Of a stretch of DNA of 64,000 bases, positions 3,854 to 58,309 are shown piece after piece. The DNA comes from Trichosphaerium sp. ATCC 40318 (taxonomy: Eukaryota > Protista > Tubulinea). The stretch lies in assembly GCA_038496445.1 (NCBI GenBank), contig JALMLS010000322.1, positions 124,001-188,000 on the forward strand, read 5' to 3'. The notes under the pieces are model-generated. The model saw only the letters and a program-made list of their open reading frames with translations, was not told where the DNA came from and made no database searches. Within the stretch, counting starts at the first letter, position 1, and each line of letters opens with the position of its first letter. The position numbers were made by a program, and so were the translations under genes.

Positions 3854-6008
3854 TTAAGAAGCAAGTGCTTCTTTGAAGTCTTCTCTGTAGTCACCGGTGC
3901 CGACAAGATTGTACTTCTCTTTCAATAACTTAACCATATTTGGTGTACAAAACGCAGGTGCACGTGGTCCAAGATGAATACCTTGAATATTGAGATGAAG
4001 GAGTGTTAACAAAACAGCAACGGCCTAGACTTAGTTAGACATGAAACTAGATACGTTCACACCACAAAAAACCCTGTACCTTTTGTTCGAACCAACTTAT
4101 GGCGTAGTTAATTGGTAAATCATTGACACCAACGTCAAGAGCTTTTGAAAGTTCGATTGCCACTTGAACAGCGCCAAAGGCGTCATTACACTGACCCATA
4201 TCAAGCAAACGAGGAATGCCTCCCAGTGTGCCAAGCTCAAGCTTATTCAACCTGAATTTCCCACATCCCTGAAACGGTTAGTCAGCTCTTGCTTCGAAAG
4301 CGTGTTTGATGTACCATTGTTAATATAAGAGATTCATCAGGTGCCGTTTTAGCTAGGTCAGTAAAGTAGCTTCTGTCACTTTCTGTACCATCACATCCTC
4401 CGATAACGAAGAATTGTTTCAGCTTGCCTGCTTTGATGGCATCCACGACAACACTTGCTTTACTGAGAATGGCATCCTTACCGTAGCCCTTAATAATTTT
4501 AATAAGTACAAAACACGTTACTCAAAACAAGAGGGCACATACAACGGTGAGTGTCTTTGGAGGAGAAACCGTTTCAGTAAAACCAGGCATTGATTTTGCC
4601 ATTTTTATTACTTCAGAGTAGTCTTCCGTGCTGATATGTTTAACACCAGGCCAACCTGTTACGGTTCGTGTGAACATCCGGTCCTGGAGAATAACTGAGT
4701 ACGAATTGTGATGTTGTCTACTAAATCAAAGACGCACCTTGTAAGAAGGATCAGGTTCAATCAAACAATTCGTTGTAATAACAATAGGTCCTGGAAAACG
4801 AGCAAAATCCCTCCTTTGTTTTTGCCATGCTCTTCCCCAATGTCCTGCAAAGTGTTTATATTGCCTCAGTTTAGGGTAGCTATGCGCAGGAAGCATCTCT
4901 CCATGTGTGTATACGTTCACACCGGTGCCTTGGTAAGCTTTAGAAAAATACGCTAATACAGGTGAGGTAATTGCAGTACCTTGAGTTTGCAGTAACAAAT
5001 CGGCGATATCTTGTATGTCATGACCAGATACGAGAATGCACTTTCCTTCAACGGGTGTTTTAAGTACATCATGAGGAGAAGGTACACCAAATTTTGTCAC
5101 GTGATTATACTCAAGAGCTTCCATTGTTTTGTAATTTACTTCGCCAACTTTCAAGGCAACACCCAAAGCATCATCGAGTGTATCAACAGCCTTTGATGAA
5201 TTCCTACCAACAAACTCGAGCGCTTCATGAATACCGCTATTGACTTCGTCTGGTATACTCGACATCCGGCCAGCATGACATGCGTAAGCAGCAGTACCCT
5301 TTAGACCGTACATGATCAATTCTCTTACTCCTAAGATATCAGGATCTATTTTCTTGCTCGCCTCCAATAGCCCAAACTGCCTTGCAAGAGTCGAGAGTTC
5401 GTTTGCATCTTGTTTTTTATCGAATTTGAGTAATACAGGATTAAGAGGATCTCTTGATGTGAGATCTTCGCTTTTTACGCCCTTGGAAGCTGCAGCGCTT
5501 TCATACATTTTCTTCGCCTACAAACAGTTCGTAAGTTTCTTTGTGAAGAGTTATTTGAGATTTAAGTGTACGTTTTCCATGTGCTTGGTTGATTCGTATA
5601 GTCTATCTACAAATCGACTACTATCAAAGTTGACGTTTGTCATTGTAGCGAAAAGCGATTCAATCACAAATGAATCAATATTATGATCTCTCACAGCGCT
5701 CAAATCATCCGCTCTTTTTGTATACATAGCAATACCTTTAACTGCATGGACAAGAAGGTCCTGAAGCGCAGAAGTCTCAGGTGTCTTACCACAGATTCCT
5801 AGTTCGAAACAGTCAATTGAAAGCACGTGCGCAGTTGACATTTTTTTTTCTTCGATCGCGTACCTACTGTAGAGCACCCTGTACCCCCTTTTGTTTGTTC
5901 GCACTGGTAACAAAGCATGTCTGTCCTTGTAGATGTATATCGCCTTTTAACATTGGCTGTACGCTTATAACTTGATTGTCGTATTCGAAGAGAAGCTGCT
6001 CTTAACAT
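3854..6008 (-). CDS. hcp: Hybrid-cluster protein (prismane; hydroxylamine/NO reductase), multi-exon, with N-terminal presequence
   Basis: [19 protein letters not shown](I)CGKTPE cluster motif, [49 protein letters not shown]. Confidence 0.95.
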
Positions 6009-6483
6009 GAGAGGTTTGTAATTAAATAGAAAAGCTATATCGTCAACGTTCTTACTATTCCTCAATCTTACCACAACATCTCAAGTAAGAACAAACCTAA
6101 ACTATCGCAATAGGCGAAGATTGCAGTATTTTTAGAGTCAAACTGTTTTGGTGTGATGTTAGAGCGAAGTGGGGAGGTTTAAAACTCAGACGTCCCCTTA
6201 GTCGTAGTTCAATTAATGTGAATAGCTATATGATCTTTTGGGAAGAAAGGACACATCTGATCTTATTCCACCGTTCAACAACGTGAAGAAATGTGTCACC
6301 ATCAGCGTAAGAATTTCTTTGATGAGCCAAGCAAATGCAAGCGAGGAAAACCATAACTTGTGTTAACAATTAGGTTGTGACTTCTTTTCTTTCGAGTAAA
6401 AAAAAAAAATCGATACGTTTAGTTCGCTAAGTCAAATAGGTTCTGGTTATCACGTGATTGTTGAAAACTAGGCAATACAAATT

Positions 6484-7545: not shown

Positions 7546-7703
7546 GAAGTAAGAACAAAAAAAAATGCATTGTAGTATTCTGTAGTATTACAAAACACCA
7601 AAAAGCTCTCAACAAGTGTTGGAATTCAACAAACGCACACTTGGTTTTTCTGTTGTGCTGTAAAAAAAATTGTTTGTACAAATGTTTGATATCTTTTTTA
7701 CTG

Positions 7704-8972
7704 TCATTTACTTTCGCAACCATCAACCCATGTGGATTGATTCTGTAGTTTTCCATCTTCAAACCATCTTTTACTTTCGCCATGTTGTTTACCATCAACC
7801 CACATTGATTGGTATTTGAGTTGTCCATTTTTGTACCATATTTTGCATTCACCGTGTTGTTTATCATCGACCCACATGCCTTGGTCCTCAATTTGTCCAT
7901 TTTCATACCATCCTGTACTTTTACCACATTGTTTACCATCAACCCACATGGATTGTCCTTCCAGTTGTCCATTTTCATACCAATCTTTACATTCACCATG
8001 CTGTTTACCATCAACCCACATATTATTAGCTGCAAGTTGTCCATTCTCATACCAATCTTTACTTGCACCATTTTGTTTACCTTCAACCCACATTGCCAGG
8101 TATTTTAAATGTCCATCTTCATACCACTCCTTGGCTTCGCCATTTTGTTTACCATCAACCCACATGGACTGTTTTTTAAGTTGTCCATTCTTGTACCATA
8201 TTTTGCTTTCACCGTGTTGTTTACCATCAACCCACATGACTTGGTCCATAAGTTGTCCAGTTTCATACCATCCTGTACTTTCACCATGCTCATTTCCATC
8301 AACCCATGTGGACTGGTCCTTAAGTTGTCCGCTTTCATACCAATCTTTGCGTTCTCCATGCTGTTTACCCCAAACCAATGTGCATTGGTAGTCTAGTTGG
8401 CCATTCTTAAACCATCCTTTACTTTCACCATGCTCATTTCCATCAACCCACATGGACTGATCCTTTAGATGTCCGTCTTCATACCACTCCTTGACTTCGC
8501 CATGTTGTTTACCATCAACCCACATGGACTGGTCCTTTAGATGTCCGTCTTCATACCACTCCTTGACTTCACCATTTAGTTTTCCATCAACCCACACAGA
8601 CTTGTCCTTTAGTTGTCCATTGTCATACCATGACTTACTTTCACCTTCGTTTTTATCATTAATCAATATGTACTGCTCCTTAAGTGATCCATTATCATAC
8701 CATTCTTTATACAACCCATTCACTGCATATTGATGAGATTGTACCTTATTATGATTAGTTTATGGTGTTAACAAAACGTGTAAGCAGTATTAAGTACCTT
8801 TCCACTTTTATACCATCTTATCCATATTCCTTTTCTTTGGCGTTTCATCAAAATGTGTATTAACTGCAGCTCTCTTTGATAGAGTGTGGAATTTTGTGAA
8901 CGTTTCCATATTGTATGTACAAATATAGGTTTGAACGTCACAAGGAGTATCCAATAAAGTCAAAGAACCCAT
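7704..8972 (-). pseudogene. F-box-like + MORN-variant (YwqK-like) repeat protein, frameshifted in exon 1
   Basis: About 14 repeats of 24 aa (GExKxWYENGQLKxQxxWVDGKQH) at 7704-8744; upstream exon LTLLDTPCDVQTYIC is 2 nt shorter than the paralog at 21.7 kb and stops at 8808. Confidence 0.7.
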
Positions 8973-16200: not shown

Positions 16201-17216
16201 ATGAAAATGGTCATGTTGATATCACAGATAGTCTTATACTTAAGGATTATTACGCATTTATTGCAACCCAGAACCCAAGTATTTCATTATCGTTTCTATT
16301 ACATTACAAGAGTCATCGTATTTTAAGAAATTCAGGGTTTCCTAAAAAGATTTTTGCTGTTGTTTTGAGTTTCTCAGAGTCTCCAATATGTGAAGATATT
16401 AAACGTGTACATATACCTTACCTAGTACAGAGTGAACCCGATCAAGAAGGTACGCATAGAATAAAAAGGTGAAGAGGGTGAGCTTAGATGTAATGTTTTT
16501 TTTCTAGATTTTACAGCTGAGAAGTTTCCGTTTGTTTACAAAGTTGATATACCCATCTCATTCTTGGTTCCTCTTCCAACAACATTTGATGTAACAATGC
16601 AATATAATGGCGATGGTCTTTGTAAGCATAAACACTACTATCGTTAAAACTGACCTTCGGATTTAGGTTCAGAAACAAAGCTATCACCATTGGTTGTATC
16701 TCTTCAAGATTTGTTCCTTCCTGTTAATACATCTCCTCACATACGACCTAAACAACGATTTGAATACATGAATCAACTTTTTGATAAACTATGGGGCGAT
16801 ATAGCTACAGCTAGTGAAGTTCGAAGTGCTCCTGATAAGCCGTAAGTGCTCACAATTTTTCGATATTTTTTTGTTCTAACTTTTTTTGTTCAAGGCCAAT
16901 GCAAGTGCTTTCAGTGAAGTATGTTGAAGTAAAAGCAGAAGTTGTCACATCTTGTTTATTGTCAAATTTTGGTGACTTCCTTGTTGAGCCATTGGAAGAT
17001 GTCAAAAAGGCTCTAGAGGAGAAAAAAGATGCGAAACAAGAAGATGCAAAAGTACCAGTCAAAGTTTTAATATGCTTGCCTAGACGCTTTCATTTGCTCC
17101 TTAAATGCTATGTAAGCGAGAAAGGCATACTAACAGAGATTGCCACAGATTATTGGCGTATTTTAGCTTACATAGATGCCCTGTTGGATGACTTGTACAA
17201 TAAAACCCCAAAATAG
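13291..17216 (+). CDS. AP5B1: AP-5 complex subunit beta-1, multi-exon
   Basis: ACECLKEIELVYPGIL, DIRDRAHFYYQLL and C-terminal ICLPRRFHLLL...IATDYWRILAYIDALL match AP5B1 motifs; start codon approximate. Confidence 0.85.
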
Positions 17217-17295: not shown

Positions 17296-17428
17296 TGTAA
17301 GAGATGTTGTAACGCTTGTGTAAATAGTTAACGCTGTTTATTACATGAACGTGTTACAATGTCTCAAATAAGTCACTCAAAGTCTATTCTCGTTAACTAT
17401 TTACACAAGCACTACAACATCTCTTACA
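17296..17428 (-). repeat. 38-bp inverted repeat / long hairpin with 57-nt loop
   Basis: 17296-17333 and 17391-17428 are reverse complements at 36/38 positions. Confidence 0.9.
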
Positions 17429-17767: not shown

Positions 17768-18614
17768 ATGACGATCGTAAACGAAACAGACTGGACTACT
17801 TTACAGCAGGTACCACCTCTTTTTTCGGCATTTTGACATTTTGACATTTTGACATTTGTCTTCATTGTAGTTCGCACCACTGTGTGTAATGAGTTTGCGG
17901 AAGAGTCTTTAGAGGTAGCAGGAAGCAAAGAACAGATTAAGTATGTATTAGAGAATCAAGGGTTATCATTAAAGGAGCAGTATTGTGTTGACATCTTCGA
18001 TACGCCTAAGCACATTGCTTGTTTTTGGGTTAGTACAAGCGCACTTTTTTCTTATGGTCCTGACGCAATAGTTCTACCTAGGCTCAATGGGTAAGCTAGG
18101 GAGACAATCAATTGTAAAGAGATTCTCAAAGCTTCGTTCTCACCCATTGTACGCTGTAGTTTATTCAATTGTCAATTACATACTTATATGTCAACAAAAA
18201 GATTAAGACCTTGTGAGCGTGAAGTTGGAAGTTTGGTATGGGTAAAAGGTACCTTGGTAGTGTACTTAATAGACTTATAAATTACTTATTTTATTTAGGA
18301 AAAGACTTGGCTGTAGAGAGTGAAAAACGTGGGGAAAAGAATTTATGTGTCCCTGTGGAAGTGTACAATACAAATCAAAAATCTCCAACAATAATGAAGT
18401 TCAGGTTGGTTGAGTTTTTTCACTTTGCAAATTGTAGTTTCTATTTTCTCACAATATTCTTTTTTTTATAAATAGATCTTGGCTTGTTGGTTGGTTTCAG
18501 CCTATATTTCAACACAGTGATGAAAGAGAGGATGGTACTGGCGCTGGATTATTTTATGATGTGTGTATGGGAAACTATGAATGTCATCCGTTGAAGGCAA
18601 TGACTCTACTTTGA
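17768..18614 (+). CDS. Hypothetical protein, multi-exon
   Basis: Open exon-like segments (MTIVNETDWTTLQQ; RTTVCNEFAEES...; KDLAVESEKRG...) bounded by GT/AG; no family recognised. Confidence 0.35.
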
Positions 18615-18817
18615 CAACATAGAAAACTAAACAGGAGAACTGCGCCCAAGAGTACCCAAAACAACCTTGTATTTCTACCTTCAATTAAAATGAAAAAAAG
18701 TATGGTAAAGTACTGCGTTTAATGCACCAATCATGCATCCCTGACAGGTCTTCTGCAAATATACACAAAACCCTCATACACTGGACACAGCTGATAGAAA
18801 TTTTTGTACATCCGAAA

Positions 18818-19295
18818 GGTCGTATTGCTCAGCTGGTTAGAGCGCCGTGCTAACAACACAGGACACTGGTTCCATCATTCCTTTGTATGGTCAAAACATT
18901 TTCGAAACCGAAAGGTCGTATTGCTCAGCTGGTTAGAGCGCTGTGCTAACAACACGGGCACACGGGCACCATCCCCCTTTATGTGACCATAACACTTTTC
19001 TACAGGCCTATCGAGGTTTCAAAAAAAATCTTATGTGAAATACTGAAAGGTCGTATTGCTCAGCTGGTTAGAGTGCCGTGCTAATAAACAGGGAATATGG
19101 GTACCTTTCTCTTTTGTATGGCATAACACTTTTAGAAAAAACCCTAAACGAGGTATGCTGCAATACTATCACGATGTTGGTCTTCAAAAATTTTGTTGCA
19201 CAATACTGAAAGGTCGTGTTGCTCAGCTGGTTGGAGCATCGTGCTAACTACACGGGACCTCGGGTTCCATGATTCCCTATGCTTATTATGGAAAA
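18818..19295 (+). ncRNA. Tandem array of four tRNA-Ile-derived (pseudo-tRNA / SINE-like) units starting at 18818, 18914, 19049, 19212
   Basis: Each begins GGTCGTRTTGCTCAGCTGGTTRGAG..GTGCTAAY (D arm/A box and anticodon arm like eukaryotic tRNA-Ile); T arms degenerate; oligo-T after each. Confidence 0.8.
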
Positions 19296-19357
19296 TGTTT
19301 TTTTTTTTTGATGTACTAGCGCAGTCAAGTGTTGTCACAAAAATTGGTAGCGCACTA

Positions 19358-20888
19358 ATGGTACAGCACATCTTAGTTTTGCTTTGCGTGATAACGTTCG
19401 TTCACGCTACAAAGCTATGCAGTTTCAGTGGCAGTATGGACATACACGAGGTACCTTTCCAATTAATGCTGGACATCGAAAATCGCTAGTATACCACGTG
19501 TTTTGTAACGTTTTTCAACCGTATTACTTCGTGGTTAATTGTTTAACAAGGCAGTTGAAGAGTGGTCACAGAAAAACGTTCATTATTACGTAACGTATAC
19601 AAACTGGGTTCCAGGATACACTCAAACGTATTTCAACCAATTAAAAACTATCTGGGAAAATCATGGTGAAGTACGTTTCACGTGACACAAATTAATCTGC
19701 TTTTCTTTACACTTTTTTTTGTTCTCCTCCTCAACCTTTTTTAATTATTCTTGGTCTCGTTCTGTTGTGTAGTTGACAGAATCGCTAGGCGCCCTTTGTT
19801 AGTTGGCAACCGATCATAGGATGGGATGATAGTAAATGTCCTAAAAACGTTGATGCATTAATTGCCAACGGACATTACGACGATTATATTAACGAGTGGG
19901 TATCAAGCTGGAGCTCTTTCCTAAAAGTGCTGTATACTCATCAATAGTTCTTATATTGATTTTATAACAAGGGAGACGATGGTGAGTGGGATACAGCGGA
20001 TGACAGATGGGCAGTAATGCGTATCGGACATGAAATGAACGGAAACTGGTAACTTTTTTTGTTGTGAAAGCCATGTTCGAATAGAGCTTCTGTTGACGCG
20101 ATGGTGTAGGTACCCATACTCCCCGACTTATCCAGGAGCTAATCAAACAGTTGAAGACTATAAGAATATGTGGATACGTGTCAAGAAGATGTTTAATAGC
20201 GGAGGTAGTCAAGCAAAAAAGAGTTGTCAACACTTAAGCCTAAATTCTCTCTGTAGGTGTTGGCGGCAATAGACTCCCGTTTGTGTTTTGTCCGAATTTC
20301 AAAGACAGTGATAGCCCCAAAATGGAAGAGTTTTGGCCAGGTTGGTTTTTGAACAAAGAAGAACATTAATTTCGTGTGTAGGTGCTGAATTTGTTGACTG
20401 GCTTTGTGTTGACGGGTACAACTGGGGTACTGTAGAGTCCTGGTCTTCCTGGATGGAACCTAAAGATGTATTCCAAGATATGATCTCACGCCTAAGACAA
20501 CTAGGTGGAGCAGGAAAGGTAGTAACTGTGTTTAAGGTTTTTATGTGTCACACAACAACTAAATAACTCTTTTATTTAAAGTACTTGGCAATTGGAGAGT
20601 ATGGTACAGTCAAAGAAGGAGGTGATAAAAATAAATGGATAGAAGATGCAGTGGACTATTTTGTAGAACAAAACGCAACTGTTGCTTGTTATTTTAACTT
20701 TGATATGCTACCAACTGATTGGTAATCTTTTTTTTTTGATTTTTTTTGTGCTTGTTTTTTAATGTTGACATGTTTTTTTCAGGGGTATGTTCGGTGGTAA
20801 GTTTGGTGATAGTACGTTTTTATTTAATGGTACAGCATATAATGTATGGAGCGGATACAAAACAGCTATTCAGAAGCTTGAAAGCTAA
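19358..20888 (+). CDS. Secreted glycoside hydrolase family 26 (beta-mannanase-like), multi-exon
   Basis: Signal peptide MVQHILVLLCVITFVHA; IANGHYDDY, MRIGHEMNGNW (acid/base Glu), VDWLCVDGYNWG, LAIGEYG (nucleophile). Confidence 0.85.
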
Positions 20889-20924
20889 TAAACGATTGAA
20901 AGTTAATTATTAGATTGACTATCT

Positions 20925-21875
20925 TTACAATCTTTCATACCATTGTTCACTACGTTTGCAACCATCAACCCATATTGACTTCTCTCTAATTTCACCATTA
21001 TCATACCATTCTTTGCTCTCGCCATGTTGTTTACCATCAACCCATACACTTTGTAATAAAAGTTGTCCATCTTCGTACCATCTTTTGCATTCACCATGCT
21101 GTTTATCATCAACCCAGAACATCTGGCACTTTAGTTGTCCATTATTATGCCATTCTTTACTTTCACCCTGTAATTTATCATCAATCCGTGTGGTTTGGTA
21201 TTTCAGTTGCCATTCTTTACCTGTACCATGGTGTTTATCATCAACAAAAACCATTTGCCTCTGTAGTTGGCCGTTATCATGCCATGCTTTGAATTCACCA
21301 CATTTTTTGCCATCAACAAAAGAGGTTTGGCATTGTAATTGACCATTATTGTACCATTCTTTGGCCTCACCATGTAGTTTGCCCTCAACCCATATGGCTT
21401 GCTGCTTTAGTTGGCCATTTTCATGCCATTTTTTGGATTTACCATGTTGTTTACCATCCCACATATGCTGGTACTTTTGTTGGCCATTTTCATACCATCC
21501 TTTACTTTGGCCTTGTGGTTTACCATTAATCCGCACAGCCAAGTATGCTAGTTGTCCATTATTGTACCAGCATTTGGATTCGCCATGTAGTTTACCATCA
21601 ACCCATGTGGCTTGGTGGTGTAGTTGTCCATCTTTGTGCCATTCTTTGCACTCACCATGCCGCTTACCCTCAAACCATAAGGATTGCTCCTTTAGTTGTC
21701 CACTTTTATACCATTTCATCCACATTCCTTTTACTCGCAATGTTTCATCAAAATGTGTATTAACTGCAGCTCTCTTTGATAGAGTATGAAATTTTGTGAA
21801 TGTTTCCATATTGAAACTACAAATGTAGGTTTGAAGTTCATAAGGAATATCCAGTAAAGTCAAAGAAGAACCCAA
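20925..21875 (-). CDS. F-box-like + MORN-variant repeat protein (intronless; TTG in place of the paralog's ATG)
   Basis: LTLLDIPYELQTYICSF then about 11 WxxNGQL repeats; N-terminus near-identical to 8808-8972. Confidence 0.75.
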   Translation of the reverse strand: MGSSLTLLDIPYELQTYICSFNMETFTKFHTLSKRAAVNTHFDETLRVKGMWMKWYKSGQLKEQSLWFEGKRHGECKEWHKDGQLHHQATWVDGKLHGESKCWYNNGQLAYLAVRINGKPQGQSKGWYENGQQKYQHMWDGKQHGKSKKWHENGQLKQQAIWVEGKLHGEAKEWYNNGQLQCQTSFVDGKKCGEFKAWHDNGQLQRQMVFVDDKHHGTGKEWQLKYQTTRIDDKLQGESKEWHNNGQLKCQMFWVDDKQHGECKRWYEDGQLLLQSVWVDGKQHGESKEWYDNGEIREKSIWVDGCKRSEQWYERL

Positions 21876-36262: not shown

Positions 36263-36732
36263 TGGTGTAATTGCGGAAACCTTCTTCTTTCCTGCGACCG
36301 TATGGCTTGCAGAAAGGGCGAGTTGAAGCTGAAAGCGATTACGCTGAAAACTTGTTTTAACTACTTTTGTGGCAACCTTCTGCTTTCCTGCGACCGTATG
36401 GCTTGCAGAAAGGGCGAGTTGAAGGCGAAAACTCCAGTAGATCAAGTTGGCAGTCTTTTCTTTGTTAGTGGGTGTGAAAGGTCACTAACGCGTGTTAGAA
36501 AGCAACAGCAGAAATAATACGCGAATTGGTAACAGAAAACGAAACGTTAAAAGGAGTGAAGAGAAAATACGACTTACTAGCGGTAGAGCATAAGAAATTA
36601 CGAGCCGAGCTAGCGCGAGCGAAAAAATTTAAAACTGAAGCCTTCGCTTTGGTCGAAAAGCACAAAAAAGCTGATGCTGAAGCTGAACTCGACGATGTGG
36701 TACTCTTAGCGCCAGTCACTACTGTAAATTAA
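36263..36732 (+). CDS. Hypothetical protein with duplicated Cys motif and C-terminal coiled coil (5' end unresolved)
   Basis: CGNLLLSCDRMACRKGELK x2, then ELVTENETLKGVKRKYDLLAVEHKKLRAELARAK. Confidence 0.4.
36278..36424 (+). repeat. 51-bp direct repeat, two copies 96 bp apart
   Basis: 36278-36328 and 36374-36424 identical at 50/51. Confidence 0.9.
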
Positions 36733-49113: not shown

Positions 49114-49443
49114 GAAATTGGTTATGTTCAACGCGCCATAATGCGATTGTGGTGTTACCCTTGTTCTCTTTAGGGTAAAATCGCCAAAACTGAGCACAAA
49201 AAGAAACTAAACAAGAGCTACGTTGACGAATACTCAAAAAAACGAAAAAGAACGTGAACTATTGGCTATACTTGTAGTCTTACGCGTAGGATACATTACG
49301 GTAGGCTTTAAACATCCCTAAATCGGCAAATTGTTTTCACTACGTGCAAAAAAAGAAACTCACGCTCTATCGGTTTTTCTAGTGTAGTAAAATAGTGTGG
49401 TTTATTGCCTTAGAGAACCTTTTCAAATCTTCAGCTTTTTAAC

Positions 49444-49510
49444 TTTTTTTTGCTTTTTTTTCGTTTTTTTTTGTTTTTTTTTTTTTGCTTTTTTTTGCTT
49501 TTTTTTTTTT
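49444..49510. repeat. Low-complexity poly-T tract with TTTTTTTGC-like units
   Basis: About 65 bp almost entirely T interrupted by GC/CG/G. Confidence 0.85.
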
Positions 49511-50573
49511 GGTTTACGATAAATTGATTTATTGGACATGTCACTCTCCATCTTTGTTTGTACCAGTGAGCTTTTGAGCGCCTGACGGAGCTTCAGAAGT
49601 GACGACCACGGATATTAATACCGTTTGCTGAAGTATGACATATTTCCGTAAACCAGCTGGATCGAAGTGTTCGATAGAGTGGTAAATCTTGTACTGCAAC
49701 GTTGGCAGTTATTTAGTATCGGATTAATTCTCGGCCGGGGAAAATATCCATAATGTAGCGCCAATGCGTGAGGTACAGCCGGACTTGCGATTTTGAAGCG
49801 TAGAAGTCGTAGTAAACCTCATGTGACGTTTCTTGTTTTTGCGAAGGGAGAAACGCTTAACCCACTCAAATGCGAACGTACATGGCATATGTAGAAGTAA
49901 GACCGAGTGAACCGCGTAGTAAATTTTTGTCAATGTTCTGTGCAAAAAGAGAAACAGACTTTTCGGACTTTCTAGAAACGTAATTGACGGTTCTATTACT
50001 TTATCAGACGTAATGTTATTTACTGCCTACGTTGCAATTGTGTAGCCTAATTAGAATTTGTTGCGTGTAGTATTTCGCCTTCCACATGATGCTAGTTCCT
50101 ATTTTGATTCCCACGAAGCTGACAAGAGCCTAGTAGTACCACTGCTAGCCTTTACTTCAATTTAATTTTGTTCGGGCAATACTACGTAGCCAAAAAGCTA
50201 CCAACTGGAAATTATGGCGTAACAAGTTGCAATGGAGCACTACTCCAGCGCACTCCGTACATACTTAAAATGTACAGCATGATTTTCTTTTCAATGAAGA
50301 AAACTTCTGCCCGCAAACTGCGTTCAATCGTTAAATGAGCGTTCAAATAAAAGATATTTCGATGTGAACGAACTTTTTTAACCCAAATCCCATCTTTATT
50401 GGGAAATTTACGCCTCCCCAAATATAAAGCCAGCCGAAAATCTCACAGAGAATGCGGTCAGTTTGGGTCTTTAGGGGAGAAAAACACCGGCGACTCCGAG
50501 GCTTTTACTAAAAAATAACCCCAACAATACAACAACTCTTCAAAAACCTCACTTTAAATTCAAAGTAAGATTA

Positions 50574-51605: not shown

Positions 51606-52783
51606 GACAAGACCTCGGCAACTACGTAGAAGAGCCTTACTTGTACAGAGAAAGGTGCGCTTTTTTTTGTGCAAAAAAGAAAAAAAAAACGCAAAAAAAC
51701 AAAAAAAAACAAAAAACTCCTGTACTAAATTTCCTTTTAGCTCGCGGACCTCCCTTTGTGAATACAACTACCTGCGCGCAGCTGTGAATAGTGTAAATAC
51801 GCCGTTTGTAAATATCATGGCCACGGACACTGCTCGAGATATCGGCTTCTCGAAACCCCCCAAACCTGAGTGTAAAAACTTCGTAACACCCTATACTGTA
51901 TAGACGTATGTGCATACCCATTTTGTAGAAAGTAAATAGTCCTAAAAATCGCTAATGCCGTATTTGGTTTTATTTTTGCGCAAACGAAAAAAAAAGCAAA
52001 AAAACTGTTCGTTAGAACTGCCATAAGTTCAGAAAATAACTTCGGAAGTAGCAGTGCTAGCTCCGCTCATGTTTATGCTTGTACCGGCTTTAGGTAATGT
52101 GGCATGTTTTTATGGTGCCCTAATGCCTACGTGGTTTGTTTCTCGTATTTTCGGGAAGAATCACCATGTCATTCAGACAGTGAGGTACTACCTTGTAGAA
52201 GCATAAAGTATAGTGTGCATAGCGCAGTTTTACAATAAGAAAGCGCGCCCAGAGAATCACGTGGTGTTTTTTTTACTTTAAAATGTGCGTTCAGTAACTT
52301 TCGAAGCGCATTTATTTTACAACGTGGTGAATAATTACGTTCAACATTACCGTACGGTAAACAAAGTGCGTTCAACGAACAGGCACTAGTGTTCCTTAGA
52401 TGTTGTTTAAGAATGGTGTATTTATTATTATTGGAACTAGCGAAGACACCGAGGATTTTAGTGATCTTTTGTGCATATTATCAAATCCGAAAGTGCTTTT
52501 GTGGGAATTATTTTGCGGCCAAACTAGTTCCCATGCCAGGATAGTTACCTAATAGTTGTTTAATTCGTTGTTGCCAGACGTCTACAACTTTTATAAAGAA
52601 AATAAAAGTTTTTGTTCTAAAAACGCGTGAAATTTTTTTGACACTCAGCGCCTGCTTTTGACTTTTTTTTAATTTTTTTAGGGCTGTACGTTAAATTACA
52701 CAAACAGAAATATGAAAATGTTGTTAATTTTTTGACACTTCAATCAAACATGATTGTTTTACCGCCCATCTGAGGTAGTGATG

Positions 52784-53353
52784 TTACGTACGCATAACCC
52801 TATTGTAAGAATTTTGTGAGTAATAATCTTCACATCCCCACGAGTCATAATCAATATGTGCTTCTGTAATTCGCGCTACGAATGTCTCTTCATTAATTGT
52901 AAAGCTATAGTACCATCCCCACCGCTGTGCAAATGTTATGTCTATGCTCTTTTGATGCTTCATATGTTTTAGAATGAGTGCTAGCGTCCTTAGACGGTTT
53001 GAAGGTGATGTCTTCTCCAAATTGATGTAATCTTCAACCGACATTTGTTTGCTGTTTTTATCCGCCTGCTTTTTACTATTAACAGCTGGCGTGGAGAAAG
53101 TGAGGTGGAGTATTGCTGTAGATCTATTGCCTTTTATTTCTCTTGGTTTAAAAGTCTCTGCGACTTTCATATTACTTATCATGCCCGCTCGAGACTTCTG
53201 CTTGCTGATCCTGTAGCTTCGAAAGATTATTGGTGTTGTAAAATACATCTCGTTCCATGAGCGGCATACAAGACGCGCAGCGGTACCTTGTGTAACATCT
53301 GTAAACTCTAAAAAGATCATCTCGATAATTTCGTTTGGTAGTGTGTCAGTCAT
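52784..53353 (-). CDS. Intronless F-box protein
   Basis: DTLPNEIIEMIFLEF...ARLVCRSWNEM. Confidence 0.8.
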   Translation of the reverse strand: MTDTLPNEIIEMIFLEFTDVTQGTAARLVCRSWNEMYFTTPIIFRSYRISKQKSRAGMISNMKVAETFKPREIKGNRSTAILHLTFSTPAVNSKKQADKNSKQMSVEDYINLEKTSPSNRLRTLALILKHMKHQKSIDITFAQRWGWYYSFTINEETFVARITEAHIDYDSWGCEDYYSQNSYNRVMRT

Positions 53354-53724
53354 CCTGTGTAATAGCAGGTAAAGTGCTCAGAGTAGAGTTTCGTTGTGTA
53401 ATACCTGTGGTAAGGATTTTTAAGTACTTAATCAAAAACTCGTGTTTTTTTCGTTAAGTGCTATCTGCACACGTGATCATAGTCATACAAAGTTTTACTT
53501 GTTGTAGGCGGTTGCATTAACACTAACTGAGTCTCCTGGCGCTTTTGTTTAAGTGAGTTTTTTTATATTTTTTGAACGAGTTAAAACATTAGGTGCTTGT
53601 AACAGAATTAGTTTCTTTAGGGTTATACATGGCGTAAAACTAAGCGCCACTAGGTTTTTTTTTGGTTGCAAATACTGGTATCAATATTTGACAAGTATAT
53701 TTCTTGGTAGGTGGTGTACAGTTC

Positions 53725-57493: not shown

Positions 57494-58309
57494 ATGCTAG
57501 CGATTTACTACGTAACTAAGGTCCCAATATCAACAGGCTACAAGAACATTGAAAAAGGACCTGGCGCACTTATTAAAAAAACTAGTCAGACAGAAGGACT
57601 TGTACAAGAATGGCACGACAATGGCCAACTGTACCAACAGTACACTCTCAAGAACGGCAAGAAGGAAGGAGAGTGTAAAATATGGCATGAAAATGGCCAG
57701 CTCGCCGGATATTGCATTTTCAAGAATGACAAAGATGACGGCCTTGTCAAAGAGTGGCATGATAATGGTCAATTATCACTTCAAATGAATTCCAGAAACG
57801 GTAAAATGGTTGGAGTACTAAAAGAGTGGCACAAAAACGGTCAATTGAGCCGTCTACAAACCATTAAGGGCGGAAGAGAGGTAGGAGACAAAAGGTGGCA
57901 TGAAAACGGCCAAATGAGTTACCATTGGATACTCACACATGACAAACATGGCAAGGAGGAATGGGAAACCAAGGAATGGTTCGACAATGGTCAAATGTCG
58001 AATCATTTCTTTCACGTGGACTTCAAGCAAGAAGGAGAGCATAAACAATGGCACGAAAATGGTCAACTAGCAGCAATGTGCTTTTACAAGAATGACGTTA
58101 GGGTCGGTCAAGCCAAAACTTGGTACTCCAATGGCCAATTGCACACACAGAAAAATGTGAACGAGGACGTTGGAGAAGAACACTATAAAACATGGAATGA
58201 AAGTGGTGAATTAATAGAGCATATCAAATTTGTGAATATGCGTACTCAGAATGAAAACCACGCAGTTACATTCATGTTCTACATAAAAGGTGACCCAGAT
58301 CTCAAGTAG
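57494..58309 (+). CDS. MORN-variant (YwqK-like) repeat protein; true start probably in an upstream exon
   Basis: About 9 repeats KEWHxNGQL; GTAAG donor at about 57474 and acceptor at about 57520 suggest an upstream exon. Confidence 0.8.
   Translation: MLAIYYVTKVPISTGYKNIEKGPGALIKKTSQTEGLVQEWHDNGQLYQQYTLKNGKKEGECKIWHENGQLAGYCIFKNDKDDGLVKEWHDNGQLSLQMNSRNGKMVGVLKEWHKNGQLSRLQTIKGGREVGDKRWHENGQMSYHWILTHDKHGKEEWETKEWFDNGQMSNHFFHVDFKQEGEHKQWHENGQLAAMCFYKNDVRVGQAKTWYSNGQLHTQKNVNEDVGEEHYKTWNESGELIEHIKFVNMRTQNENHAVTFMFYIKGDPDLK

Follow-up and report, generated by a model that had tools for sequence, protein, structure and literature searches.

Four tandem tRNA-Ile-like units that lack tRNA competence and share a near-invariant 5′ segment

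Results

Genomic context of the array

The window, i.e. the whole 64-kb stretch of DNA that was analysed, carries eukaryotic genes with short introns. Its region 18811-19310 is occupied by four direct tRNA-like units, which lie on the plus strand between two genes of the same orientation.

16899-17216, plus strand: AP5B1-like gene, C-terminal domain; upstream of the array and on the same strand
18818-18902, plus strand: unit 1, tRNA-Ile-like body, anticodon AAC
18914-18999, plus strand: unit 2, the best preserved cloverleaf of the four, anticodon AAC
19000-19048, plus strand: spacer between units 2 and 3, sharing partial homology with that at 19134-19211, which separates units 3 and 4
19049-19133, plus strand: unit 3, the sole copy with anticodon AAT
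19212-19309, plus strand: unit 4, anticodon AAC, the most diverged 5′ half of the four
19360-20725, plus strand: multi-exon gene with a signal-peptide-like MVQHILVLLCVITFVHA N-terminus, starting about 50 nt 3′ of unit 4

The gene at 19360-20725 contains the motif HEMNGNW, which gave the impression of a glycoside hydrolase; this identity is unconfirmed, as a Pfam search with single exons of the gene returned no match. Other genes in the window encode MORN_2, F-box/LRR, ankyrin, Prismane and type-B carboxylesterase proteins. Assembled transcript contigs from JGI sample 3300016894 were the only expression-related data found for this organism, and one of these contigs matches window positions 52287-53409 at 99.6% identity. 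The best named protein match, at 44% identity, belongs to the amoebozoan Rhizamoeba saxonica, an identity at which placement of the protist by this match is tentative.

The three MORN_2-repeat genes (7653-8744, minus strand; 20895-21755, minus strand; 57494-58309, plus strand) have a DNA period of 72 nt. A 126-nt block at 8842-8967 is 90% identical to 21742-21867, which points to paralogues 12.9 kb apart, and the MORN_2 genes make up a repeat-protein gene cluster with the nearby F-box/LRR and ankyrin genes. The hybrid-cluster-protein (Prismane) gene (4726-6074, minus strand) is divided between two or more ORFs, among them 4726-5508 and 5551-5913. Such a gene is unusual in a eukaryote and may have been acquired laterally, with introns gained afterwards.

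Units and spacers

The units start at 18818, 18914, 19049 and 19212, and are thus spaced by 96, 135 and 163 nt. An earlier sequence-only reading of this DNA had given the same copy number and spacing, and both were recovered by a 25-mer scan and a profile search. With up to three mismatches allowed, a scan of the 64 kb for the 25-mer GGTCGTRTTGCTCAGCTGGTTRGAG gave four occurrences, the expectation from 100 dinucleotide-preserving shuffles being 0. An nhmmer profile of the units found the four alone in the 64 kb (E = 1e-21 to 1e-24), with the next match at E = 3.8. As that reading had also described, every copy is preceded by the hexamer C(C/T)GAAA (CCGAAA in units 1 and 2, CTGAAA in units 3 and 4) and followed by an oligo-T run, at unit positions 82-85, 83-86, 82-85 and 87-98 in units 1 to 4, respectively.

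In both the spacer between units 2 and 3 and that between units 3 and 4, an A-run/T-run is followed by ATACTGAAA, which is located immediately 5′ of the next unit; the last 34 nt of these two spacers are 24/38 identical. TRF found no microsatellite-like repeats in the spacers. A fifth, decayed copy either upstream (about 18690-18770) or downstream (19330-19420) had support neither from nhmmer nor from shuffle-tested local alignment. Its use as a neutral benchmark was rejected, its resemblance to the units being by eye only and its best local alignment being matched in 8 of 300 shuffles.

Outside the window, the 25-mer and a 20-mer from the anticodon arm had no match in viral contigs. A search of JGI metagenome contigs with a 21-mer gave nine matches, all of them chance hits in G+C-rich bacterial DNA without a tRNA-like continuation.

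Relationship to tRNA-Ile(AAU)

Comparators were collected with the pattern GCTCAGYTGGTTAGAGCNNNGTGCTAAYAA, in which either AAT or AAC is allowed; it retrieved 24 loci from public collections, 11 of them viral and 13 labelled 'genome'. ARAGORN, run on 20 of the 24, called tRNA-Ile(aat) at the matched position in all 20 and tRNA-Val in none. Since these 20 comparators are without exception tRNA-Ile(aat), the 5′ part of the units is of the tRNA-Ile(AAU) type, and the Ile-like body seen in the sequence-only reading is borne out by a D-arm/anticodon-stem pattern for which all 20 loci run were tRNA-Ile(aat) genes. The signature GCTCAGYTGGTTAGAGC NNN GTGCTAAYAA is matched in full by units 1 and 2, with few departures in unit 3 (C26T) and unit 4 (A22G, A38T). 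The acceptor stem GGTCGCG/CGTGACC of two fetched genes (L022 and L031) is close to the GGTCGTA/TGTGACC of unit 2. Judged by their sequence, the units are derivatives of tRNA-Ile(AAU).

The anticodon is AAT in unit 3 and AAC, which would correspond to Val, in units 1, 2 and 4, again in agreement with the earlier description. Given the tRNA-Ile(AAU) type of the 5′ part, these three units have an Ile body in which T36C has turned AAT into AAC.

Several departures from true tRNA-Ile genes are common to the units. Position 9 is T in 4/4 units and A in 18/18 true tRNA-Ile genes fetched from public collections, position 57 is C in 4/4 units and G in 18/18 of these genes, and in three of the four units a U30-A40 pair replaces the U30-G40 wobble of the 18 genes. 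These derived defects (T9 and C57 in all units, A40 in three) suggest that a single damaged founder was subsequently duplicated.

In the course of this comparison, contig CAXXMW010000001.1 (L024, L026, L029, L033, L034; labelled as an Arenicella MAG) was found to carry tandem units of about 2188 bp; the contig is 33 kb long. In the L024 piece, ARAGORN calls a tRNA-Ile(AAT) and a tRNA-Arg(TCT) in each unit of about 2188 bp. A tRNA-Ile with A34 is of the eukaryotic type, so CAXXMW010000001.1 probably represents an array of eukaryotic tRNA genes misbinned into a bacterial MAG.

Loss of tRNA competence

None of the four units is a competent tRNA. With default settings, ARAGORN called no tRNA anywhere in the 64-kb window, and it called none of the units at default, -ps or -ps80. 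The -ps80 setting, with or without introns (-i), produced only junk calls on the opposite strand, and the calls listed at -ps60 were likewise all junk; intron-containing or relaxed tRNA models were rejected on these grounds. Rfam gave no match at gathering scores in the whole 64-kb window. At E ≤ 10, the region 18600-19500 matched no tRNA, Vault or other tRNA-like family, but only, by chance, a snoRNA-like model at 18 bits. As a control, a true tRNA-Ile placed in a stretch of equal length scored 65.8 bits (E = 6e-14), and ARAGORN also calls true tRNA-Ile genes. Covariance-model scoring, which the sequence-only reading had put forward as a check, hence shows that the units are not standard tRNAs. 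Vault RNA, Y RNA and other curated RNA families were rejected as identities for the units, Rfam being negative, Vault unmatched at E ≤ 10 and the B box not conserved.

The cloverleaf is lost in some arms and retained in others. In a hand-written cloverleaf alignment, 89% of the cells pair, compared with 36-63% in slid-partner controls. The D arm is perfect in 4/4 units. The acceptor stem is complete in units 1 and 2, confirming that it can still pair in these two copies; it has 6 pairs in unit 3 and 4/7 in unit 4. The stem of unit 1, GGTCGTA/TATGGTC, has 7 standard pairs, three of which are G-U, and that of unit 2 likewise has 7 standard pairs. The anticodon stem is complete in unit 2 (5 pairs) and unit 4, carries one mismatch in unit 1 and is broken in unit 3. 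Units 1, 2 and 4 retain an anticodon loop of 7 nt with U33 and A37.

The T arm is destroyed. Its stem is reduced to a remnant of about three pairs (GGG/CYC) from the canonical five, its loop measures 7-10 nt (TTCCATCATT, CACCATC, TACCTTT and TTCCATGATT in units 1 to 4), and the loop core reads TTCCA, CACCA or TACCT where TTCGA is expected, by which the T54/psi55/R57 positions are lost. All copies indeed lack GTTCGA, their sequence at this place being GGTTCCAT, GGCACCAT, GGTACCTT and GGTTCCAT in the order of the units. The excess length of this region, previously put at about 3 nt, is 2 nt: the distance from the anticodon stem to the acceptor 3′ strand is 24 nt in each of the units, as opposed to 22 nt in true tRNA-Ile genes.

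In addition, each unit carries a lesion of its own. Unit 1 has a C28-A42 mismatch in the anticodon stem; its T loop is GGTTCCATCATTCC and its terminator TTTT is at 18899-18902. Unit 2 contains an 8-nt microduplication (ACACGGGC x2.2 at 18952-18969), from which its T region GGGCACCATCCCCC partly arises; its discriminator position is A and its terminator TTTT is at 18996-18999. The register of the anticodon stem is broken in unit 3, the acceptor 3′ strand of which is short by one nucleotide, and this unit has an internal TTTT at 19112-19115 (unit positions 64-67) besides the terminator TTTT at 19130-19133. Unit 4 departs from the others in its 5′ half (A7G, A22G, G27A, C28T, A38T), has the T loop GGTTCCATGATTCC and a T12 terminator at 19298-19309, and carries 7 extra nucleotides before the acceptor 3′ strand, which displace this strand.

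Comparison of the four units on the cloverleaf revealed one-sided changes that preserve pairing in the anticodon and acceptor stems and no compensatory two-sided base-pair changes. Folds of the individual units were no better than those of shuffled sequences. An alternative conserved RNA fold was rejected, since the RNAalifold solution was weak (−7.6 kcal/mol), was without covariation and was no better than shuffles.

Uneven conservation along the unit

Mean pairwise identity of the units is 89% at −6 to −1, 97.6% at 1-21, 75% at 22-43 and, at 44-67, 53% when ungapped or 64% when gapped, falling to about 50% at 68-85. The flank at −40 to −7 is 3-63% identical depending on the pair (mean 28%), and the spacers are at most 63% identical. 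Variable columns number 1 of 21 at 1-21, 11 of 22 at 22-43 and 18 of 24 at 44-67, with one at −6 to −1.

The sequence-only reading held that decay is greater in the T arm than in the rest of the unit, in a manner that simple neutral pseudogenisation does not predict. The distribution is indeed uneven: 12 of the first 43 columns are variable, compared with 18 of 24 at 44-67 (Fisher test, p = 3e-4), and the contrast between −6 to +21 and 44-67 is stronger still (p = 6e-7). The step at about +21 is significant (1-21 compared with 22-43, p = 0.0015), but that at +43 is not (22-43 compared with 44-67, p = 0.13). Had the 27 nt from −6 to +21 diverged like the alignable spacers of units 3 and 4 (37%), they would show no more than one difference with a probability of 7e-5. 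The first 37 or so nucleotides had been described as nearly identical; they do differ between pairs at only 1-6 positions, but the near-invariant block is the segment from −6 to +21, positions 22-43 being just 75% identical. This module comprises CYGAAA, the acceptor 5′ strand and the A-box-like TTGCTCAGCTGG and is located as follows.

18812-18838, plus strand: near-invariant module of unit 1
18908-18934, plus strand: its counterpart in unit 2
19043-19069, plus strand: its counterpart in unit 3
19206-19232, plus strand: its counterpart in unit 4

The sharp step near +21 suggests that what is held invariant is the start site and the A box, with the terminator also kept. The arrangement had been tentatively interpreted as a constant leader plus a variable segment. 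As a design, this receives no support from the data: divergence of the variable part is close to that of the spacers, and this part bears plain mutational lesions, namely the microduplication of unit 2, the 1-nt loss and internal TTTT of unit 3 and the 7 extra nucleotides of unit 4. The conserved part coincides with the promoter-proximal module, which is a simpler account of the pattern than one that invokes an RNA domain designed to vary.

Pol III-type signals

The A-box-like element TTGCTCAGCTGG at positions 8-19 is identical in 4/4 units. Compared with the A-box consensus TRGCNNAGTGG, it has T for R at position 9 and one extra D-loop nucleotide, the latter as in true tRNA-Ile genes. The B box GGTTCGANNCC is matched 11/11 in 18/18 true tRNA-Ile genes, as opposed to 7-8 of 11 at the degenerate positions in the units:

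18868-18878, plus strand: degenerate B-box position of unit 1, GGTTCCATCAT, 8/11 to GGTTCGANNCC
18965-18975, plus strand: degenerate B-box position of unit 2, 8/11
19100-19110, plus strand: degenerate B-box position of unit 3, 7/11
19263-19273, plus strand: degenerate B-box position of unit 4, 8/11

T-run terminators (T4, T4, T4 and T12) start at unit positions 82-87 and occupy the homologous position in 4/4 units; the background frequency of runs of at least four T is one per 100 nt. The proposal that the units encode a Pol III tRNA-like non-coding RNA is consistent with the A-box-like block and with the T-run at a fixed distance from it. The B box is normally the main anchor of TFIIIC, and as it is damaged in 4/4 units, transcription driven by the A box is an assumption of the model presented below.

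Discussion

A model for the origin of the array

Taking these findings together, we favour, with moderate confidence, the explanation that the units are tRNA-Ile relics of the Pol III type that form a small family at this locus and the promoter and terminator of which would still be under constraint. The array would then probably consist of tRNA relics that are still transcribed and would not stand for a new RNA class.

According to this model, the founder lost tRNA competence first, by a change of the T loop from TTCGA to TTCCA with a gain of 2 nt, by the replacement of A9 with T and by the conversion of U30-G40 to U30-A40. The damaged founder would then have been tandemly duplicated. After duplication, the hexamer at the start site and the first 21 nt would have stayed near-invariant and the T-run terminator would have been retained at +82 to +87, while the anticodon arm drifted moderately and the T arm, the B-box region, the acceptor 3′ strand and the spacers drifted at similar, presumably neutral, rates. 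The 'variable T arm' would accordingly be a product of decay and not a designed variable domain. Transcription is presumed to proceed from the A box, aided by the CYGAAA context of the start site and by an A/T-rich element conserved upstream, and to yield tRNA-like RNAs of about 80-90 nt without a D-loop/T-loop elbow. RNase P, RNase Z, CCA addition and elongation-factor binding all need the tRNA elbow, and because the predicted RNAs lack it, they are not expected to be processed, to be charged or to take part in decoding.

Alternative explanations

The most serious competitor, which we regard as less likely, is that the units are dead tRNA-Ile pseudogenes, untranscribed and under no selection, in which gene conversion or unequal exchange between the copies, or with true tRNA genes elsewhere in the genome, has homogenised the 5′ halves. 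Every unit carries structural lesions, and neither thermodynamics nor covariation supports a structured RNA. Furthermore, the groupings of sites along alignments A1 and A2, judged by eye, conflict with each other: units 1 and 2 are set against units 3 and 4 upstream, units 1 and 4 against 2 and 3 in the T loop, and units 1 and 3 against 2 and 4 in the acceptor 3′ strand. These conflicts suggest exchange between copies, so recombination or gene conversion within the array is possible and could mimic constraint. Concerted evolution is documented for tRNA families (PMC4981973).

Dead pseudogenes should by themselves diverge evenly at the rate of their flanks, whereas identity here is 97.6, 75 and 53% by segment, a pattern that gene conversion may nevertheless have produced. 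Several properties of the array speak against this competitor. The homogeneous tract is just 27-43 nt long, with a sharp upstream edge at −6; gene conversion needs longer flanking homology and would smooth the neighbouring sequence too. T9, found in 4/4 units, and A40, found in 3/4, are absent from the 18 fetched tRNA-Ile genes, all from other genomes, which makes a canonical tRNA-Ile an unlikely donor. Terminators, finally, are kept in 4/4 units. With four copies and no orthologous locus, selection is inseparable from concerted evolution.

A distinctly less probable alternative is a lineage-specific, functional tRNA-like regulatory RNA in which a 5′ module is active, as a source resembling 5′-tRNA halves or as an anticodon-arm decoy, and the 3′ part is unconstrained. 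Formulated as a gene family, and held to be equally doubtful, the units would be B-box-independent Pol III genes with a functional 5′ module made up of the acceptor 5′ strand, the D arm and the anticodon arm; the module could be an encoded regulator resembling a 5′ half or a decoy for enzymes that read the anticodon arm, and the 3′ part would serve merely as a bridge to the terminator. The uneven conservation is compatible with such a function, as are the D arm that is intact in all units, the 7-nt anticodon loop with U33 and A37 in units 1, 2 and 4, and the survival of pairing in the anticodon and acceptor stems through one-sided changes. However, the segment 22-43, which includes the anticodon arm, is only 75% identical and not significantly above the T region (p = 0.13), and the register of the anticodon stem is gone in unit 3. 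No relative was found in viral or metagenome collections, no Rfam family matches, and the four copies sit at a single locus within 64 kb.

Far less probable is that the units belong to a tRNA-derived SINE or to some other mobile element repeated head to tail, even though their tRNA-related 5′ end with an A box is a feature of tRNA-derived SINEs. The suggestion of a SINE family, made in the sequence-only reading, is not supported by copy number or architecture within the 64 kb: the window has no dispersed copies, searches of viral and metagenome collections gave no matches, and the units, each about 85 nt long with its own terminator, lack a tRNA-unrelated body, an A-rich or LINE-like tail and target-site duplications; moreover, the B box, conserved in SINEs, is the least conserved part here.

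That the units are working, if unusual, tRNAs, in which an Ile-to-Val anticodon shift supplies a tRNA-Val(AAC) with an atypical T arm, is scarcely credible: three units do carry AAC on an Ile-type body, unit 2 has full acceptor, D and anticodon stems with a discriminator A, and alloacceptor anticodon shifts are known in eukaryotes (PMC3923123), but T54/psi55/R57 are lost, a T stem of about three pairs closes a 7-10-nt loop that differs per copy, each copy has a different additional defect, and ARAGORN (default, -ps, -ps80) and the Rfam tRNA model fail on the units and pass true tRNA-Ile.

Relation to known systems

The array is akin to the clustered or tandem tRNA genes and pseudogenes of eukaryotic nuclei, being the result of local tandem duplication in which every copy has its own 5′ flank and T-run terminator. 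It also resembles them in its tRNA-Ile(AAU) descent and in the loss of the cloverleaf in some arms. In contrast to such pseudogenes, decay is non-uniform, with a near-invariant −6 to +21 segment and a T arm at the level of the spacers, and in contrast to eukaryotic tRNA clusters and pseudogenes, founder defects are common to 4/4 units and the 64-kb window holds no intact tRNA gene.

Another protist with tRNA-type genes in head-to-tail repeats is Entamoeba. Its arrays are reported to hold tRNA genes separated by spacers of short tandem repeats and to account for more than 10% of the genome (PMC2652664). Compared with these arrays, the present one has only four units, none of them competent, and spacers without microsatellite-like repeats.

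The single T36C change from Ile(AAT) to Val(AAC) in 3/4 copies is reminiscent of alloacceptor anticodon shifts, or tRNA remolding (PMC3923123, PMC2997554). The tRNAs in documented shifts stay structurally intact and syntenically conserved (PMC3923123, PMC2997554), whereas the T arm is destroyed in the units described here, and the anticodon shift is consequently probably without effect on decoding.

An A-box-bearing, tRNA-like 5′ end, ends that can pair and a short (predicted) transcript that ends in a T-run are features that the units have in common with vault RNA, SINE heads and trypanosomatid snRNA companion elements, and the small tandem cluster is a further similarity to vault RNA genes. 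Vault RNA, tRNA-derived SINE heads and trypanosomatid tRNA-like elements keep the B box. In the present units, by contrast, the B box is the decaying part, and these have no match to Vault or any other Rfam model at E ≤ 10. A companion small-RNA gene beside the array that such an element could serve, as is found with the trypanosomatid tRNA-like promoter elements, was sought and none was found.

If the promoter-proximal constraint is real, the array would capture the transition from a tRNA gene to a Pol III unit that is merely tRNA-like, in a protist that has been little studied. Transcription signals would then outlive the tRNA fold, transcription would proceed without dependence on the B box, and the array would bear on the origin of tRNA-derived non-coding RNAs and SINE heads. 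If, on the other hand, the 5′ halves are alike through gene conversion only, this is an ordinary decaying tRNA cluster of annotation value only, a value it has because standard tRNA finders miss the units.

Other repeats in the window

Just 3′ of the AP5B1-like gene, a 38-nt inverted repeat (17296-17428) has arms that are 95% complementary and flank a 57-nt loop. The hairpin has a folding energy of −55 kcal/mol (z = −11), and its sole Rfam match is a plant miRNA-precursor-like model at a sub-threshold score (41 bits, the gathering score being 140). The repeat may represent either a hairpin RNA or an element resembling a MITE.

Two 64-nt copies at 36271-36334 and 36367-36430, 92% identical and 96 nt apart, contain a short internal hairpin each; they have no Rfam match, and their fold is no better than that of shuffles. 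Simple repeats of the window include a perfect 8-nt tandem repeat (CATTTTGA x3.6) at 17829-17857 and a T-rich repeat with a period of about 10 nt (TTTTTTTTGC-like) at 49434-49523.
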